Source: Magallana gigas
Lineage: Eukaryota
Length of the DNA: 64,000 bases
Assembly (NCBI RefSeq): GCF_963853765.1
Contig: NC_088859.1
Location: 22,258,001 to 22,322,000, forward strand
Direction: 5' to 3'
A model generated the notes under the pieces. The model had not been told where the DNA came from. It worked only from the letters and a program-made list of their open reading frames with translations, and ran no database searches. The number at the start of each line of letters is the position of its first letter. Positions within the stretch are counted from its first letter, which is position 1. The position numbers were made by a program, and so were the translations under genes. Below, one piece after another: positions 8,052 to 46,926 of the stretch.

Positions 8052-11000
8052 TTACACCCGAGTTTCACTTTGATTGGGGACTCCATTTCTTATCAGTAAT
8101 TGTTCTGTCTCCTGGTGTCCTCCATTTGTAGCTGTATTAGGTCCCGGGCTCTGTGATCGAAACTACATAATTTAAAACAAAACTGTTAATTCTTTATCAT
8201 TCTTAATTGACTTGATGAGAACTTTTACCTTAATGTAAATGAGTTAATTAGGAGCACCAACTTATAAAATCTAAGGGTAAATCAATATGTCATTAAATAT
8301 CAATGTATTTCTTGATTTCATATGTATTGATAATCCACAGCATATCAAAATGACACTTAAAATTACAGTATGTATTGGTCACATGGTTTCATGAAATTTT
8401 GTAAGAATAGTTTATAAAAGAGCAAATACAAATAATTCAGCAATTGTTGTCAATAAAAGTGTTTTGAAAATCTAATTACTGTTGAAGCAGAAATATTCGA
8501 TGAGGATTTAATTTCGTTATTTTCATTTGCAGTATGAATAATGAAATTAAATCCATGCCGAATTTTTAACTAATTTTTAAGTGTTAATGAATACAAAAAT
8601 ATTACGATATGATGAAATTAAATGCCTATGAAATTTTATTTGTTTTAGAAACAACAAAATTTTGACCCAACGAAAATATGTGCTTCTACAGTACTTAAAA
8701 TTTATACAGAATGCATAATTTCAGTTTTGTTTTAACTAATTTTTAAGTGTTAATGAATACAAAAATATTACGATATGATGAAATTAAATGCCTACAAAAT
8801 TTTATTTGTTTTAGAAACAACAAAATTTTGACCCAACGAAAATATGTGCTTCTACAGTACTTAAAATTTATGCAGAATGCATAATTTCAGTTTTGTACTT
8901 TTAAAAGTATATTCTAATTAAGCAATAATCAAATAAAAGATTCAATAATTTATGTTTTCTTAGTGTAGAAATGTGATAGTTTGTGATTATAATCGCCAAA
9001 GTCCATAAAAACAGACAAACACAGAGTGGAAAGAGCTATAGTGCATGGTAGGCTTTTCCACGTACAATAGTGTTGACATTCACCCGCAATACAGACTTTG
9101 TTTACACACCTGTAAACTCAATACTGACTATATAAACGTACCTCTTTTTCGCTTTTTTCCTTCTCTTTTTCTTGTGCTTTCCTTCTAATATACCTAAATA
9201 AAAATATAGGTAGATTAGTACATGTAATATATGTATTGTTGGTAACAGATCATATACATGTATCACCTTGTTTTTACATTTTGTGATTCTGCATTTCTTT
9301 GGCCTAACTACAAAATTCATATGCCACACTTAATGATTTTATATTAATGAAGCTATCAACATATTCGGTTGAAGTGGAGAATAATAACAGTTAAAATAAC
9401 TGGTTCAAAACCTTTGAGATATCATCAGCACAGTCCTACCTTTTGCGCAGCACAAGGATGCACACAATGACCGTCACAAAGAGCACAATGCCCACTACAC
9501 TGGCTGCTATGGCCGCTGCCTTTACATGATCTTCTCTTTCCCCTGTAAAACAGAGCACATTTTTAAATCTTAAATCACAGTCACAGATCATTACATGAGC
9601 TGTGTCAAGACCAGACTTACAGATCAGTCTTTGATACAGGCTAATGCACACAATTATCAATGCTTAGTATAGTGTTGCCGCTAGGAAATATGGAATTTAT
9701 TTACCTCAATAATTCATTAGATAAAATATAAGTGAAATGAATATATATATCAAATACTTTTACTGATAGAGTTGACATCCAAAAATATAGAATGTTATTC
9801 ACTTACAGTTAAAAGAAAATGAGGCAGAAATATGAATACAGTAGGAAAAAATAAGCATTTCGTAGATCATTAATGGCAAATTAATTGTGACTTTATCAGG
9901 AGGATGAATGAATGAGTAAACTTGCAAAAGGACAGTTTCATTAATCTTTAGCTACCTCACTTTAAAGTAATTGTTAAGATCAGTCCTACAATCAGCAATG
10001 CACATAGAGAGGATCTGATATGTAAATACATGTGTTAATAGCTTTAAAAATCTAAAACAGTTTAATTTGTTTACCATAAAAAGGTCACTAATAACATTAT
10101 AAGAAAAAAGATTTGAGATATACTGGTAACATATATGAGATTAGTGTGTTGTACATGTATTTTTTGGTGTGCAGCTATATATAGCCAAAATACCAAGAAG
10201 ATGAGCAATAATAATTTGTGAAACTCATTCTTTCAGTTTAATACTATAGCTCACAGTAAAACTTGCCAATCAATCAATTTAATCCTACTCTTTTTCTATT
10301 TGATTGATGATAGTTCTGGTAAAAAAAAATTAAGGTGGTTGGGACACCTCCATATTGTGACCCACTTCCTATTGAAATGAACACAAAAAAATCAAGTGAT
10401 TATTACTAATTTTTTTCTTTCCCAAAATTGTTACCTTATAAGACTGTAGCGCAATGGGTTAATTAGAGCATTAACTACTAAGTTTTGAGTTTGAATTCCG
10501 CTGGGGCTTTTATAATTTTTACCTTTCCAAAAAAAAATTAAATATTTTTGGGTCAAATATTGCATAATTTGAAAATTCTAAAACAGTGAAAGCATATTGA
10601 TTACAATGTACATTAATATTGACAAGTCTGCCAAACAAACTTAAGTGTATATAATATAAAATGCAGAACTATTATTCATAAGACAAGGCAAGTTAAACTG
10701 CTGGTAAATTAGGTAAAATTTGCATTTATATAGTAAGGCTAAGCAAAATAAAAAGTGTAAGTTATTTCAACTTTTTGTTATGTCCCTTTGCTCACAGAAA
10801 AATTAATTTTATTATACCGGCAATAGGCATTCGAAGAGTAGATTTAGAAAATGTTAGAATAGTATAGAATTTTACACTTACACAGCGATCCTACAATACA
10901 TCAATGAGTTAACAAACATATTTAAGATGGTTAAATTGCATCTAAAAGCTCAACATATGTAGCTAGGATATATGGCATTTCTGTGAACAATGTTGCTTTT

Positions 11001-38368: not shown

Positions 38369-39375
38369 TAATTTGATTAGCCAAAGGTGTTAAGGTCAAG
38401 ATCTAGTAAATGATTCCAGACAGTCTTTTTGGTGCTAGAACTATTATGACGTCATAATTGATTTGATGAATTTTTTTCCCGTATTTTACGGCTTTTAAAG
38501 AATTGTGTGTAAAATAAAACAATATTTTGACATTCTATATTTAATCACGGGATAAGTAATTCCGGTACCTATATTCTATATGACATCATTTTAAAGAGGA
38601 GGTCAAGAGCTTGTATTGTATAATGCCGTTTTTGGAGAGACGGTAGGCATTCTAGATATATTTCATTGGTCAAAAATGGACAAAACTCCGAGATTTGTTA
38701 CTTTTATCCTTCATATTGCATAGAAAACGATTGTTTAAAACATGATTTTTCATTGTTTTTTTCCAAAAATTTAAGCCCCGGTACACCCTATCAAATAAAG
38801 AAATAAATATGAAGCATCATTAAAAGAATTTATATCCTGAATTTCATAAACCTGTAGGCACCTTACATTTACTAGATCTTGACCTTAACTTATTTGGAGG
38901 CTCTCAATGGTAGGTTAATATCAATTTACTGTTACCACATAATTAAAAGCCGCAAAACATCTAAATCAAGCAATCATAATTATGTGTCTCATCAAATTTC
39001 TAATTACCCTAAGGTGTTATAACTCATTATTTGGAGGCTCTCCATGCTGATATCAATTTACTGTTACCACATAATTAATAGGCGCGAACCATCTCGGGGC
39101 GAAACGTCTCAGCGCGAAAGGTCTTTAGGGGCGAACCGTCCCGCACTCGTGTAAACTTAGGGGACTGTATAATGACCTAAACTTCGGGACCAATAAAACA
39201 TGTAAATTAAGGATAGAAAACTAATGAGCGCCTTGTGAATTGAGGAGGGATAGCTTATGAGTGTCTTTTCTATTTAATCTGTTTTGTTTCACATCATACA
39301 TTTATTGGTTATGATTGTTTATAGGTATATCGAAATATTCCACGTACAAATTTCTAATAGCTTGAGACACCAAAG

Positions 39376-42300
39376 ATGGCTGCGCCCAGAGAGGACGACT
39401 CAGATCAAACAGATTATGGGTCTGCAAGTAAACCCTGCACGTCCAGAACATGTTTTGATTTTTCTACATTCATGAAAATGCAGGGAAAGAAAATTGAAGT
39501 AGGTATTATTCGAGTGATAAGTAACAATAGGTCAAGAATGATGTGTGTATTTGAAACATGTTGAGGTCATTATCTAGAATAAGTTAATATTTTACGCCGC
39601 TGTGGCGAGCCCAGCAAGAATCACAGGGGCTTGGTTGTTGGATAGTTAATTTCCTAATTATTTGTTCCCGAAGAAAAAATTGATTAAAATTGGTAATCTT
39701 ATGTGTATTTCTGTGTATTGCAATAAATAAATTCACTGAAACCCCCCATTTCAGTCATGTTAAAAAAAAGTATTCAATGTACATTTAAAAAAGTAAAGGG
39801 ACGACACTCACCATCTTGGATTTATAGGGGGTCCTCGTTTCAAGCTATGTTTTAAACAAGTTCTTCCGTTTCTCCAACGATTTCTGACGAGATCTAGGTT
39901 GGAAAATATTCAAATGACTTATTCCTATCGTCTGACTACATCTGTATGCTGCATAATAAACACATCATTCCGAAATGTACTACATACTTGCCAAACTTAT
40001 CAAAAGCAACGGAAGTTTACTTTTGAGTGACGTAAATTCTCTATATAATCACTGAGATATTCCGAAAATGTATGATAAATCTAGAGAGAGCAAAAATTCC
40101 GTGAAAAGATATTCCTCTTGGTTTATCCAATGCTTTCGGATCTCCTCAGTGATTACATGGAGAGTTTGCATCAACTTCCGTTGCTTTCGATAAGTTTGGC
40201 GAGTATCTAGTACATCTCGGAACGATGTGTTTATTATGCAGCATACAGATGTAGTCAGACGATAGGAATAAGTAATTTTAACATTTTCCAACCTAGATCT
40301 CGTCAGAAATCGTTGGAGAAACGGAAGAACTTGTTTAAAACATAGCTTGAAACGAGGACCCACTATTAATCCAAGATGGCGAGTGTCGTCCCTTTACTTT
40401 TTTTAATGTACATTGAATACACTTTTTTAACATGACTGAAACGGGGGGTTTCAGTGTATATATTTAATGCAATACACAGAAATACATCTAAGATTACCAA
40501 TCTTAATCAATTCTTTCTTCGGGAACAAATAATTAAGCACTTCACTATCCAACAACCAAGCCCCTGTGGCAAGAATTACACATTCCTTGCATCATTGTCA
40601 ACTTTGTGTTATTTAGTTTTTTCATTTTGAGAGAGAGAGAGAGATAATTACATATCTTATAATTATTAGATTATTACATAATTATTCCATATTATTTCTA
40701 AGTTAAAAAAAATTCTTCCAAAATACAAAGACTTGATTCCCTTAAACCTTTCTTTACTTTTTGAGAGAATTGATCAGTATGTAAAATATAATTTGTGTTT
40801 AATTTGGTCAAAAGTGTTAAAGCTGCTTGGTCCGATTTTTTTGTTATTACAGTATCAAAATGTTTTCCATACAAATCATTTATCTTAGAAAGTTATGGAC
40901 TTTCTCCTATTTACACCAGCAGAATCAGTCTCCTTTCAAAGTTAGAAATATTCAAAGTAAATAAAAATAATTTCTCTTTGGGCAAACCAAAAAACAAACC
41001 AAAATGCATCACAGGAATTTTTAGAAAAGGAAACCGCTTGGTTTTGTCCCCCGAATGATTGGGGTTATTCAACCCGCATGCTATGCATCGATTGTAAAGA
41101 AAGCAGACTTTGGAAATATTAGCGAACAAAACGTACAAATGTTTATTTGTAATTTGTCTGATCATTTCGGCCTTTATTTAAAGCGATGTCAAAGTCGTAA
41201 TACAACCATACCCGTCTCGTCATCAGGGGTGAAATTTAACATGAGGCGAAATAACGCGGTACCTTTTAATGTCGTTTGTTTTGTTAGCAAATTTTGTACA
41301 CATTTTTCTTCATTGAAATTTGGCATAATTGACGTGTAAAACTACTGCAATGTATATCATTATACATATACTAAGCATAGCCATTGTTTAAAAGCGTGTA
41401 TAAAATTTGATATAAAATCGGACCAAGCAGCTTTAATGATAAAAGCAGTATTTTTTTTTTCATTGTACCTTATTTTTTCCTGGTTCATAATTTATAAATA
41501 TATTTATTTTATATTTTATAGTTTATTTAAACTGTGAACAATACGAAAAGGTATCATGTAAATATAATACGAAAAACCATTGTCTTAGTTACCCTTTTTT
41601 AAACAAACTATTTGACGACATGACCAGCCAAAAAAAACCCACAGAAATCAAAAATCTATGAGATAGAAAAATCTCTGGAAACTTGTGTCCTATACCATGT
41701 CAAAATTGCAAAATGCATGCCATCTCCAGGGAAGTGCAGGTAATTTGCAACAAAAATATGAAAATTCTAAGTAAATTCTAAGAATCATAACTATTTATAA
41801 TTAATCTCGGTACCGCAGAAAATATTACCGGTACTTACTAGTTCTATTTTAAAATTAATGTTTATTAAGTTTAATAATTTACACTATAAGCAAGATTTTC
41901 TGAGCATGTAAAAATTCCTTCTTTTAAATTCAAAATTAAGAATTAAAATATTGTTAAAAGCAATATTAAGCATTGAAAAGTTTGATAATCTTTTAAAATT
42001 TCCTTCTCTACTCCTTGACATCTTTGAGATAAACTCTGCAGGTAGTAAAACAAGAAATGATATTTTCCAACAAAATTATGATATCCATGATCAGACCCTG
42101 CATGGGTAAGAGGTTTGGACAGCAATTCATGTAATTTAAACATGTATCTAACGTTTATCTTGGTATCCTTTTCGGTTCCATTTCTTTTCTGAACGGTACT
42201 GGGTGGTTCGCTCCGATCACATGTTTTGAACAAGCCTAGCTAGTATAACAGTCAAGCCAAAGAAACAACTAGGAAAATAATCTTTATTATCACAGGACAT

Positions 42301-42384
42301 TATTTTGCTGCCATTATAAACATGAAAGACATAGAATTCAAACATTGCATTCCAGTTTACACAGAAGTCAAGCTAGTACATCTA

Positions 42385-42437
<53 letters not shown>

Positions 42438-45180
42438 AACATGGAGATTATGTGGAGTCCAACATTTAGTCAGACCATTTTCTGATGCTGAATGTATTGT
42501 GTTTGCTGGGATTGATATACTCCCGGCCATTCATCACAACATACACTGCACATCCACTCGGCAATTTGAAAGTAACTGGCCCCAGTTGCTTTCCAAACAT
42601 CTGCTTTGGTCCAAGGATGAATTTTTCTTCCATCAAAGTTTTTACGTGGCCATCAATGGCCATTACATTCACAGCAAGTCTTATTAAAACCTCCTTGGAA
42701 GGCTGCATATCCACTGTATAGGTATCCATCTGCACTCTGGTCTGTACATCATAGTAACCAGTAGATGGCAGCACCAAATACTTGTTCTCTGACAGATCTA
42801 CCCCGCCATGTACGTAAGTGTTCTTTTCAGTTTGTGTCCAGCTTAAAATTCCTATGGATGAAAGATTGAAGGTAAACAGTGCCTAGATACGGTACACAAA
42901 AAGTGAATAAGTACAATGTATTCCAACATATATCCAACTCATTTACCATGTTTTTTCTTGGAATGTCTATACTGTAGTAAGGCAACAGGACTGTGGGTTA
43001 GAGTTCTCACTAGAAAAAAAAAGTCATCATCAACATCATCATCATCATCATAAAAATCATATATATCATCATTGTCCTATCATATATAATCATCAATAAG
43101 AACCAAAGAATTTAAAGATTACAAAGCACTTACGTGTGTTGTTATTATCCAAAGAGTTTGTTGGGTATGCTATAATCTGAAAAATACAACAAATTGAAAG
43201 TGATGCCAGACGGTTTTTTTTTTCAAAATGGATAAGTTTTTGTTATGCAATGCATTAATAAAATATCAGTCATTGTAAAGTTTAAACACACCTGGAAATC
43301 TAGAAAAAGGTATGCAATTAAGAGGAAACAGGAGGCTTCAAAAGAATGCATGGTCATTAACGAATGACTTCAAGCTGTTGAAGAATAATGTCTTGAAACG
43401 ACAGAATGACTTTATATATATGTAGTATTTCTATATCTCCCTTGTTACTATATTTGATTTAAGTTGTCATGCATTTTTAGTAATTACCTACACCGACGTT
43501 GAGTAATGGCTGTGAATTCCCGGACTGATTCTGGAATAAGCATGCACACCTTGGTCTCTTTACAGACAAAAAAAAAACGGACATCTAGTTGTACACACGG
43601 GTACCACGTAACGTAAAATCCCCGCGCGGAATGATATCATCCACAAAGCAAGCCATGCAGAGCGCCTCCGGTATATTGGTGTCAAATCTATTAAAAGGAA
43701 TAAAAGTAAATAGTAAAATTCAATTTTAAAAAATCTGAGAGAGAGAAAAAGGAAGGTAAACAATCGTACAATCCCCTTCTGTCAATGAGACGAGTCACTA
43801 TCGGATCTTCACGCTAGAGCTAACGGGCAAGCCTTTCTTCACCTCTTTCATTTATTTGGTAGTTAGTGTATTTTGCATATTGAAATTTAGTTTTTGCAGA
43901 CGTAAGGTAGAATGATAGGTGGGCGTAGAGTGGTTTTTCTGAACTATTTAAGATATGTAACCATTGTGTTGGTATCCCTATTGCTGGGTTCATCACCCGT
44001 CACACAGAGCGACCGACTCCTACAGATTTAATTTAATCGATTTAAAATTAACGGGAGTTTTGCGGGGCTGTAGACTATATGACTGCGTGGTTTTGCCATT
44101 TTGATTTGACCATGATAATGAGTTGGCGACCTTCGAGTTTTATGATATGCGCTCTCCGAGACGTCTGCAGTGAATTTCATTTTTCTTTACATCTATATTA
44201 TTATCTATGATAAGTTCACATCATTTGAAAAATTGAATAACCATCATCAGGAGAAAAAAGATTTTGGAGACATTAATATTTACCTACATGAGTAAAACTA
44301 CTATGTAAAAATGTAAATAAACTAGTTGCCTTCTTTTGGTTCTCTTGTTTTTGTTTAAGAATTTGTCTGCTAATTACGCACTGTAAATTGATATAATACG
44401 CGTGCGATAAGCATCTGCCAGATGCGTAACTTACTGAACCTAGTTCCTTATTTCTGTTTTGTTGAGATCACGAAATTTTTAGACACACGTTTCATAGTTC
44501 ATAGCACATGCAAACTGTCAACCAATTAAGAAACGTATCGCACAAATGCTACAAGAACAAATGTGAAAATTCAGTATAGTTGTATACCTTGCAGCCATTA
44601 CGTTCAGATGAAAGCAATTTGATTTTCTTGCGAAATGTTTGAAAAATACAAATGAAATACCCAGTTGATTTAAATATAGTGCAATATTGTATTGAATTGT
44701 TTTCCTTCCAGAAAAAAATGGAAAATAAGAAGAAAGAGGAAGAGAAGCCTTGTCCGCTAGACAAGGATAGTCTGGGCCGGAGTACCTGGGCATTCCTCCA
44801 CACCATGGCGGCTTACTACCCCGACAAACCCACGCCCAATCAACAGAACGACATGTCCCAGTTCATTCATCTATTCTCGAAATTCTTCCCCTGTGACTAT
44901 TGTGCCGAGGATCTCCGTAAAGAGTAAGAGTTTTTTAAAGCAGAGCATTGTCAAGGCCGTCTAAAACAACGTCTCATATCTAATTAATGTTCTGTAATTT
45001 CCTCTCCCTTTTTCCAGGCTAAAAACAAACAAACCACAGACATCATCGCGTGAGGAACTTTCTCAGTGGATGTGTAGATTGCATAATCAAGTGAACAGAA
45101 AGACTGGGAAGCCAGAGTTCGACTGTAGCCTCGTGGACGAGAGATGGCGAGATGGCTGGAAGGACGGTAGCTGTGGCTGA
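39376..45180 (+). CDS. GFER: FAD-linked sulfhydryl oxidase ALR/Erv1, 165 aa
   Basis: Exons 39376-39498, 44712-44923 and 45018-45180 are phase-consistent (498 nt). Motifs: [27 protein letters not shown], active-site [49 protein letters not shown] at 45400. Confidence 0.95.
39622..40568. mobile_element. 947-bp foldback DNA transposon with long TIRs (about 400 bp) and 8-bp TSD gcaagaat
   Basis: cacaggggcttgg ... ccaagcccctgtg; TSD at 39614-39621 and 40569-40576. Confidence 0.92.
40821..41432. mobile_element. TTAA-TSD non-autonomous element (Kolobok-like), TIR agctgcttggtccgatttt
   Basis: TTAA at 40817-40820 and 41433-41436 with matching TIRs; inverted relative at about 54946-55500. Confidence 0.85.
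42392..42435. repeat. (CT)n microsatellite in the 3' region of the TNF-like gene
   Basis: Direct reading. Confidence 0.98.
42466..43357 (-). CDS. TNF-superfamily ligand-like protein with predicted signal peptide, 185 aa, nested in GFER intron 1
   Basis: Exons 43292-43357, 43134-43176, 42947-43009 and 42466-42851 are phase-consistent (558 nt); in-frame TGA upstream of the ATG. Protein: [30 protein letters not shown]...SPVALLQY...ILSWTQ...[27 protein letters not shown]...[10 protein letters not shown], matching the TNF pattern A-x-L / L-x-W / G-V-x-L / L-V-x-P-x-x-G-x-Y-x-V. Confidence 0.8.
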
Positions 45181-46926
45181 CCATTTAAAAAACATTCCTG
45201 GGGAAAAGCGACTGTGATACATGTATATGGAAATTCATTTTGCCTCCATGACATGCACAATTTGTCAGTTATTTGTTTTGATATACAATTTGACGCTGTT
45301 TTTAAGCGATATTGTACATTTTTGCATGCAAATCTTTATCTCTTTACTAGATTGATGTTTGCATCAGTTAGTATTACACTAACAAATATGGTTGTTCGGA
45401 ATAAAATACCTCAAGATTAAACGATATGCATTGTACATGTTGTTGTGGTGTTGGCTTTTTTCTATGTCGATGATGCAGTTAATTTCATTTATATTCTCCC
45501 TCACTACGTTCGTCCGAATATAAAACAATAAAGTGCTAAATAAATAAAACCAACAAGTACTACATAGGTACGCTGCTCGCTAGCGTTATTTTATTTATAC
45601 ACAAAAACACATATTAAACACCCATCTGTCAGCCAAAAATCAACACTTTCCATGTAATCTGCAGTCATTTTAACTACTTCTTCTAGCGAGCGAGCTTAGA
45701 GTGCCACGCCACCGCATGGTCCTACTATTTATTTTACCTGACCACGTGACCCAAAACCCATTCGAGTACGTATGAAAACCCATCACGCACATAATTTTAA
45801 TTGTATACGTCTGTCAATAAGGGTGGAAATGCATTGTAAAGCAGGCTTTACTGTAACGCTAGTATAGAAATTTTCGATCATTAAATTTCGGGTGTTTTTT
45901 GAGGAGAGGGTTGACGTTAAGATTGAAGATTTTAAAGTACTGGAATATATTTAAATATATGCACTTGATAATCAGAAGTCTTGTTTTAAAATCTACCGAT
46001 TATTTAAACATGTATTGTGTAAATGTGCTTATTTGCGTGAAATTCGGATTTCTTTTTTTTTTTTTGGAAGTTATGTATATTTTATGCATGTATTGCTGTT
46101 CATAATGTGGAACATAATGCCAGGTAATGTGGGAGCGTGAGGTATGTGTGCCTGCCCGCGTTGGCTTTCTTTTCATATCGGTACAAGCCACAGACATCTG
46201 ACGTCAAAATGTTTTCTTTTTATCATAAGATAATTCCCTGAACTAATGCTATTACGTAATTATAGTTCATAGAATTCTCTTACTTAAAAAGAAATATTTT
46301 TAACGTCAGATGCCTGTGGTAAAAATGTACTTATAATGATAACAGTATCTGTATAAAGATCTGTGTATAGTTTTTCGAATATTTCAATGAATGTTCACTG
46401 CGTATTAATATATTTAATCGAACCAAAGATATAGAAACCCACCAGAAGCTATATTGTATGGACAAACAAGTACCACTATCTTTCCTTATATATTTACCAA
46501 CTTCCATAAAAAATCGTATGTGTACATTTTTTTCAATCCATTATATAAGCATAAAGTATGATTCCACACGATGTATCACTGCAGTTCCTGATGATGCGAA
46601 ACGTGTAGCATTAAGTCCTTTATTTATTGCATAAGACGTCACGCTGTCTCTTGGCAGTGACCAGTTGGCTAGCTAAGAACCATAGACTGGAATCAGACTT
46701 GCATCAAACATTATATATATTTGAGATTTTGATTAAATGCACGAGTCTTAAATAATACAAGGCTATACCATTCCAGTACACAAGCCCTTAGCAACAAGTT
46801 CACTTGATTATTGAAAGTATTTTACAAGTTACATCTATATTAATTAAACATTTAGACACAGGTCTATTATCAGATGGTCTCTGAAAGTTTTGATTGGGAG
46901 CAAAATCTCCCCAGATGACGTCATCT

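Follow-up and report, generated by a model that had tools for sequence, protein, structure and literature searches.

A TNF-ligand-like gene on the opposite strand within the first intron of the oyster sulfhydryl oxidase gene GFER/ALR

The window analyzed here, a 64,000-nucleotide stretch of the Magallana gigas (C. gigas) genome, carries two protein-coding genes in an opposite-strand nested arrangement, best explained (probability roughly 0.8) as two separate functional genes that have likely stayed together through intronic trapping and not mutual need. The host is GFER/ALR, whose three coding exons encode the FAD-linked sulfhydryl oxidase that serves the mitochondrial disulfide relay. The guest is LOC105328518, a TNF-like gene. 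It has a promoter region (starts around 43830–44005) and a poly(A) signal of its own, which together with its four coding exons lie within intron 1 of the host. The layout would have arisen, or been undone, by a rearrangement at the DNA level within the oyster family, leaving Crassostreinae and Saccostreinae nested and Ostrea edulis not, and would persist, in all likelihood, because an intronic gene cannot easily leave. Cohabitation is probably largely neutral, with each gene regulated on its own.

The host gene and the repeats in its first intron are as follows.
39376..39498, plus strand: GFER/ALR coding exon 1, 41 codons, for the N-terminal shuttle arm and its Cx4C motif (CTSRTC).
39499..44711, plus strand: GFER intron 1, the host intron, 5213 nt, GT..AG, removed at the joint 39498→44712 in RNA contigs.
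39622..40568, no strand assigned: foldback (long inverted-repeat) element with 396-nt arms that are 93% complementary.
40817..41436, no strand assigned: multicopy MITE-like element with perfect 23-bp terminal inverted repeats.
44712..44923, plus strand: GFER exon 2, which encodes the first half of the Erv1/ALR domain including the CDYC redox center.
45018..45180, plus strand: coding part of GFER exon 3, the second half of the Erv1/ALR domain, with CX16C and a stop codon at 45178–45180.

The start codon of GFER is located at 39376 and the donor GTAGGT follows directly after 39498, with the 5′UTR reaching back to at least 39350 (contig L014) or 39172 (contig L013). Four independent RNA contigs (runs X2 and X4, and Logan mRNA contigs L013 and L014) carry the joint 39498→44712; the X4 contig comprises 39369–39498, 44712–44923, and 45018–45165, and the joint 44923→45018 is present in raw reads and contigs. 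The spliced coding sequence is 100% identical to XP_011427735.2 / XP_052688690.1, named FAD-linked sulfhydryl oxidase ALR in RefSeq, and exon 1 is conserved in Saccostrea, Ostrea, C. virginica, and Pecten (tblastn). The earlier note on this DNA, made from the letters alone, had placed exon 1 at 39376 ahead of a 5.2-kb first intron, and the RNA contigs bear out both statements. It had also considered that GFER transcripts might start downstream of 43700, with 39376–39498 belonging to another transcript; the transcripts found join 39498 to 44712. The 3′UTR extends to about 46674 in the alignments of L013 and L014. An apparent 3′UTR intron at 45490–45804 was rejected as an insertion/deletion difference, the mRNA contigs carrying about 29 other letters there.

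Exons 2 and 3 match Pfam PF04777 with 65.5 and 57.3 bits, respectively, and the proximal CxxC (CDYC) and structural CX16C motifs can both be read from the translation. Exon 2 additionally has an in-frame internal ATG (KKMENKK). The N-terminal shuttle CxxC is absent from the exon 1 product, which has CTSRTC (Cx4C) at this place, and CTARTC in S. cucullata; judged from sequence, the arm is a spacing variant in which the cysteine pair has not been lost. Within intron 1, the MITE-like element is abundant in RNA libraries on both strands, with depth and loose ends at 40817 and 41436.

The guest gene is composed of the following features, all on the minus strand.
43292..43830, minus strand: first exon of the TNF-like gene in its productive form (L016), with 5′UTR 43830–43358 and CDS 43357–43292.
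43688..43769, minus strand: optional 5′UTR intron of 82 nt, GT-AG, from the alignment of L019.
43488..43492, minus strand: alternative 5′ splice sites of the first exon, from contigs and RefSeq models.
43134..43176, minus strand: coding exon 2, 43 nt, from contig alignment.
42947..43009, minus strand: coding exon 3, 63 nt, where the TNF homology domain begins.
42411..42851, minus strand: last exon; CDS 42851–42466 covers 127 TNF homology domain codons and the stop, followed by the first part of the 3′UTR.

The coding sequence (43357–43292, 43176–43134, 43009–42947, and 42851–42466) has canonical GT-AG borders and encodes 185 amino acids, identical to XP_011427734.2 (RefSeq: uncharacterized protein LOC105328518 isoform X2). 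Exactly the same four-exon splicing is found in contig L016, and a joint 42850/1→42946/7 in RNA shows CT..AC, equivalent to GT-AG on the minus strand. The four-exon minus-strand CDS at 42466–43357 proposed in the earlier note is therefore correct by both protein and RNA, and the RNA joints of the two genes likewise uphold its placement of a complete TNF-like gene antisense in GFER intron 1. The transcription unit is longer than the CDS, with a 5′UTR reaching 43830–44005: L016 starts at 43830 and further contigs at 43855–44005. The guest contigs L016 and L018–L020 cover 44005–42411, wholly inside 39499–44711. Contigs break within a (GA)n tract at 42381–42443, and an AATAAA is found on the minus strand, the side of the TNF-like gene, at 42288–42283.

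The first exon is spliced in more than one way. Donors are found at 43292 and 43488; a third, at 43492, belongs solely to RefSeq model isoform X1 (ATG at 43584) and had no supporting contig or joint among the RNA data examined. In the productive form, the 5′UTR at 43830–43358 holds three upstream ATG ORFs, and 43357–43292 encodes a 22-residue hydrophobic N terminus. The joint 43488→43176 occurs in four of the five Logan contigs (L017–L020, from four different runs) and in the X2 contig, a tally of few assembled contigs that is not a count of molecules. This junction has a TAG in frame and lacks a start codon and a signal sequence or hydrophobic N terminus; contigs using the 43488 donor have no full-length ATG ORF, only a 42-residue upstream ORF and an 87-residue C-terminal fragment. 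Together with the finding that L016 alone encodes the 185-residue protein, this favors a reading in which the TNF-like gene is regulated mainly by unproductive splicing, or is turning non-coding, and secreted protein is made only when the 43488 donor is skipped. We regard this as possible but doubtful: contigs do not give molecule numbers, and the exon of the TNF homology domain is under strong purifying selection, with an omega of 0.05–0.11 in nested and un-nested lineages alike. Isoform X2 of O. edulis also has an annotated hydrophobic first coding exon, so that maintenance of a protein product is clear. Unproductive splicing is in any case compatible with, and not opposed to, the explanation by two separate genes. 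The loss of the start codon in the commonest assembled splice form is relevant to the annotation of oyster cytokines.

The guest protein is a divergent member of the expanded TNF-ligand family of oysters, as revealed by Pfam, PDB profile, and AlphaFold/Foldseek searches. It matches Pfam PF00229 with 25.8 bits against a cut-off of 23, over profile positions 1–121 of 127, and its O. edulis ortholog carries a precomputed match to the same family. A PDB profile search returned TNF ligands as 44 of 46 matches, with weak E-values (0.005–0.4). The AlphaFold2 model is confident for residues 90–194 (pLDDT 80–92), and all of the top 50 Foldseek hits in the PDB are TNF ligands (RANKL, TL1A, FasL, TNF, LT-α, and CD40L) with a probability of 1.00 and target TM-scores of 0.58–0.71. 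A three-copy model scored 0.82 where the best control scored 0.00. The scale was calibrated with two copies: 21 of 30 proteins solved as one-chain pairs came up to this mark, and 0 of 23 single-chain ones did. The score may reflect a memory of solved TNF trimers. Contact agreement between the three-copy runs was at least 84%, with partner pLDDT of at least 76. The N terminus contains no basic residues, and only seven residues precede its hydrophobic run; it may act either as a signal peptide or as a short signal anchor. The gene forms a single-copy, oyster-specific orthogroup known to RefSeq only as "uncharacterized protein"; it is a conserved, strongly constrained, and unnamed member of the oyster TNF expansion.

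The comparison across bivalves suggested in the earlier note gave a divided answer. The TNF-like gene is nested in GFER, with the same flanking genes, in five Crassostrea and Saccostrea species: C. gigas, C. angulata, C. virginica, Saccostrea cucullata, and S. echinata. In O. edulis (OX387707.1), however, both genes are intact but about 7 Mb apart, with GFER near 51.04 Mb and the TNF-like gene near 58.08 Mb. Neither a TNF gene nor a remnant of one was found at the GFER locus of this species or at those of Pecten, Sinanodonta, and Solemya. Nesting is consequently lineage-specific and neither gene needs it. It is dispensable because O. edulis keeps the two genes apart while the domain exon remains under purifying selection (omega about 0.1). 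Nesting would be ancestral, and lost in Ostrea, under two of the three possible topologies. The GFER protein tree did not order the three oyster clades, giving 80–88% support on very short branches, Nei-Gojobori dS values between Crassostrea and the other oysters are saturated, and published results on the order of the oyster subfamilies conflict (PMC10848854; PMC4177229). Sequence flanking the TNF-like gene of O. edulis has matches in this genome only to dispersed repeats. The nested layout, as a rare genomic change, could itself help to order the disputed subfamilies.

The persistence of this layout across two oyster subfamilies (five species) is a counterpoint to neutrality, since a useful arrangement would be expected to persist as well. 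It is the first of several points in favor of nesting as a regulatory device, in which antisense transcription of the TNF-like gene, for instance in challenged haemocytes, would hamper elongation or splicing of GFER, or its promoter would drive a divergent short GFER, linking an immune signal to the disulfide relay. Guest transcripts begin only about 700–900 bp from GFER exon 2, the in-frame ATG of which could serve an induced short form. A precedent is ceh-10/polq-1 of C. elegans, where a gene nested on the other strand is able to switch on a short host form (PMC12274878). Transcriptional interference by nested genes is known in human cells (PMC3192792), and mammalian ALR has anti-inflammatory roles in the literature, which holds nothing on cis-coupling in oysters. 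Contig L017 runs unbroken from 44924 to 43488 and then continues into the spliced guest exons; taken as a real molecule, it would mean antisense transcription over a host exon, a counterpoint to the separation of the two genes. It was set aside as such a transcript because its end exactly at the exon 2 donor resembles an assembly-graph join between GFER pre-mRNA and a guest transcript. No reads were found for a GFER start inside intron 1, sense depth upstream of exon 2 being at most about one read, and O. edulis retains both genes intact and un-nested. A regulatory role for the nesting is judged improbable.

The explanation by two separate genes is supported by two stranded poly(A) runs (X19 and X20, about 1% of each), in which GFER is expressed and the TNF-like exons have zero depth. 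As for the "convergent overlapping transcription" of the earlier note, the antisense layout stands, but no exon-exon overlap was seen and the guest is wholly intronic. Its suggestion that the two genes could be coupled or antagonistic found no support in the present data. The most specific form of coupling, a bidirectional switch at the TNF-like promoter of cupped and rock oysters through which immune or stress induction would alter GFER, by interference or by a short form from the exon 2 ATG, is in our view highly improbable. Such a putative short form would be comparable to the short form of mammalian ALR, and the switch, if real, would build a fixed link between a cytokine signal and mitochondrial redox import.

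Compared with the GFER/ALR/Erv1 oxidases, the host has the same Erv1/ALR domain, CDYC, CX16C, and cysteine-bearing shuttle arm on an exon of its own, and its three-exon structure is common to other bivalves. It differs from vertebrate and yeast ALR/Erv1, which have a CxxC arm, in the Cx4C spacing of CTSRTC (CTARTC in Saccostrea). The guest resembles the TNF ligand superfamily (PF00229) in its jelly-roll TNF homology domain, short N-terminal hydrophobic segment, and stalk, and may, as predicted, also form a homotrimer, whereas it is only 14–24% identical to solved TNF ligands, with a Pfam score barely above threshold. The protein has only 185 residues, and its 22-residue hydrophobic N terminus, which lacks a cytoplasmic tail, may be closer to a signal peptide than to a type II anchor. 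As in the expanded TNF repertoire of C. gigas (PMC4346834), its family has grown within the lineage, and paralogs are located on another chromosome.

A description of a GFER host with a TNF-ligand guest was not found in the literature searched by locus and accession names (LOC105328518 and the XP accessions). RefSeq already contains both genes, and the pair is an ordinary case of a gene within a gene: the guest unit lies in one host intron and both genes are transcribed, with the caveat that L017 reaches 44924. As in other metazoan opposite-strand nested genes (C. elegans ceh-10 in polq-1, PMC12274878; human, PMC3192792), the guest is a complete multi-exon gene with its own promoter and encodes a protein unrelated to that of the host. 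Host-guest interaction in the oyster pair, in contrast to ceh-10/polq-1, is only a proposal. Among human nested genes, about 63% are oriented opposite to the host (PMC3192792), and surveys of human and fly nested genes revealed no consistent correlation of expression (summarized in PMC3192792). Since Crassostrea and Saccostrea have the same orthologs nested that Ostrea has un-nested, the oysters provide a natural experiment on how nesting relates to the expression of host and guest, with Ostrea as the control.

Spliced RNA confirmed that the TNF-like gene LOC105328518 is nested in antisense orientation within the first intron of GFER, as the earlier note had proposed, on the evidence of the GFER joint 39498→44712 and the spliced guest transcript contig L016 (SRR24058832). 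The features of the locus, and of the corresponding C. angulata locus, are as follows.

Features of the nested locus
39376–39498, plus: GFER exon 1, from the ATG, 41 codons followed by GTAGGT (from sequence)
39499–44711, plus: GFER intron 1, 5213 nt (RNA joint 39498→44712)
39622–40568: foldback element with 396-nt arms, 93% complementary
40817–41436: MITE-like element, 620 bp, with perfect 23-bp terminal inverted repeats
42288–42283, minus: AATAAA (from sequence)
43357–43292, 43176–43134, 43009–42947 and 42851–42466, minus: TNF-like coding exons, canonical borders, 185 aa
43769–43688, minus: optional leader intron of the guest, 82 nt, GT-AG (contig L019)
44712–44923, plus: GFER exon 2, one half of the Erv1/ALR domain (PF04777, 65.5 bits)
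45018–45180, plus: GFER exon 3, the other half of the domain (PF04777, 57.3 bits)
C. angulata, locus coordinates: GFER exon 1 10001–10123, exon 2 from 16165; guest 14825–13702, minus

The GT..AG joint 39498→44712 was found in both RNA-contig runs, which come from separate studies, and a single contig of one of them (X4) spans 39369–39498, 44712–44923 and 45018–45165. Contigs L013 (SRR15293271) and L014 (SRR5830809) carry the complete GFER open reading frame with identical joints, a 5′ end at 39172–39350 and a 3′UTR extending to ∼46674. A GFER start downstream of 43700, the condition under which the earlier note would have been refuted, is thus ruled out, as the transcripts join 39498 to 44712. 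The spliced product of 165 aa corresponds to FAD-linked sulfhydryl oxidase ALR (XP_011427735.2, XP_052688690.1) and is 100% identical to the C. gigas and C. angulata RefSeq entries. GFER is broadly expressed, with 38 transcript contigs on record and presence in all four RNA runs examined; in X19 and X20, the two stranded poly(A) runs, every GFER read has a minus-strand first mate, the pattern that libraries of this type give for plus-strand RNA. Exon 1 encodes the N-terminal shuttle cysteines with Cx4C spacing (CTSRTC, 39433–39450), and the CTARTC at the matching position in Saccostrea cucullata indicates that this spacing is conserved in oysters. Within the 3′UTR, ∼310 bp of the window (45491–45803) are replaced by ∼29 unrelated letters in two mRNA contigs; an intron was rejected here in favor of an insertion/deletion by which haplotypes or strains differ.

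XP_011427734.2, annotated as uncharacterized protein LOC105328518 isoform X2, has the same sequence as the 185-aa guest product, which is 100% identical to C. gigas RefSeq entries. L016 aligns at 43830–43292, 43176–43134, 43009–42947 and 42851–42411 and contains the complete guest reading frame after a leader of 474 nt in which three upstream ATG reading frames occur; joints of minus-strand type, read as CT..AC on the plus strand, are also present in run X2. All guest contigs terminate at 42410/42411, within a (GA)n tract, and these ends together with the position of the AATAAA place the guest unit, ∼44005 to 42270, wholly within GFER intron 1. The guest is rare in RNA data, with zero depth in both poly(A) samples and few contigs in other data.

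The choice of donor, 43488 or 43292, determines whether the guest start codon and hydrophobic N terminus are retained. Four contigs from four runs (L017–L020) and an X2 contig join a first exon ending at 43488 to 43176, with an in-frame TAG immediately ahead of guest exon 2, so that the start-less form makes up four of the five public guest contigs. Neither the start codon nor the hydrophobic N terminus is present in these transcripts, whose longest ATG reading frames encode a leader peptide (42 aa) and a C-terminal fragment (87 aa). RefSeq isoform X1 (ATG 43584) ends its exon at 43492, four bases upstream of 43488, a donor for which no support was found among the RNA contigs and joints examined.

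The last guest exon matches Pfam PF00229 over nearly the full profile at 25.8 bits, narrowly above the cut-off of 23 bits. Searching the PDB with a profile built from oyster orthologs and two paralogs gave TNF ligands for 44 of 46 matched sequences, with weak E-values. In the AlphaFold2 model (pLDDT 80–92 over residues 90–194), all of the best 50 Foldseek PDB matches were TNF ligands (RANKL, TL1A, FasL, TNF, LT-α, and CD40L) at probability 1.00. A three-copy model scored 0.82 against 0.00 for the best control, with contact agreement of at least 84% and partner pLDDT of at least 76 across runs, a pass that may stem from solved TNF trimers memorized by the model; of the proteins used to set the mark, 21 of 30 with structures solved as one-chain pairs reached it, and none of 23 with single-chain structures did. 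The N terminus has no cytoplasmic tail and hence could act as a signal peptide instead of a type II anchor.

The comparison across bivalves bore out the nesting for Crassostrea and Saccostrea only. Besides C. angulata, it occurs in C. virginica, S. cucullata and S. echinata, and in these four species GFER is flanked on both sides by small genes with products of ∼101–102 and 122–128 aa, as compared by product length, with direct flank sequence matching for S. cucullata. In all four, the gene for the ∼101–102-aa product and GFER are arranged head-to-head, with a few hundred bases between this gene and the GFER start (corresponding to ∼38900–39350 in the window), which suggests a bidirectional promoter region common to both; the small gene is absent from the genes called at the Ostrea edulis GFER locus. 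At that locus (intron 1, 2.7 kb) a six-frame profile search found no TNF-like sequence, and the guest ortholog, LOC125668166, sits ∼7 Mb from GFER on the same chromosome, its flanks matching only repeats in the genome studied here. In Pecten maximus, Sinanodonta woodiana, and Solemya velum, too, no TNF-like gene was found at the GFER locus. Nesting may have arisen in a common ancestor of Crassostrea and Saccostrea or else have been lost on the branch to Ostrea; the oyster subfamily order, which bears on this choice, is disputed (PMC10848854) and is not resolved by the GFER tree. As judged from codon comparison, the guest domain exon is under purifying selection, nested or un-nested, with ω of 0.05 between the two Saccostrea species and ∼0.10 for Saccostrea against Ostrea; dS is saturated in comparisons against Crassostrea.

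The two genes are most likely regulated independently, with a stretch of DNA in common. Opposite-strand nesting is common in animals, and surveys of human and fly pairs revealed no consistent expression correlation (PMC3192792); the un-nested state in O. edulis shows that both genes can do without the nested layout. The earlier note, correct as to structure, had also proposed regulatory coupling, a function that is unsupported here and appears unlikely. Interference or host induction is known for particular nested pairs (PMC3192792; PMC12274878), and the guest starts just 0.7–0.9 kb from GFER exon 2, which contains an in-frame ATG. The sole hint of coupling is that L017 runs from GFER exon 2 into the spliced guest; however, the end of this contig coincides with the exon 2 donor, and an assembly join is the best reading of it.

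Other RNA in the intron was also observed. Plus-strand poly(A) RNA covers 41489–42284 in X19 at a depth of 1–3, comparable to the GFER exons and with first mates likewise on the minus strand, and falls to ∼0 at 42285; the stretch lies just past the guest 3′ end, on the opposite strand. No splice joint was reported for this RNA, which may derive from GFER pre-mRNA, from an alternative terminal exon, or from transcription reading out of the neighboring MITE. The MITE itself is hugely represented in RNA libraries on both strands (summed contig depth to ∼63,000 in X4), with reads breaking precisely at both of its ends. The arms of the foldback element are 155 nt apart, and the spacer holds a second, shorter inverted repeat.

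The nested pair is already implicit in the RefSeq annotation, and a literature search found no paper describing it. Its value lies mainly in the natural comparison of nested and un-nested states and in the splice form that skips the start codon of this conserved but unnamed TNF-like gene of oysters. Elsewhere in the genome, on another chromosome (C8), are one paralog 34% identical to the guest (5.09 Mb) and a tandem array of weaker relatedness, comprising at least six weak matches to the TNF domain (19.90–20.04 Mb), in agreement with the TNF gene expansion already known from C. gigas (PMC4346834).
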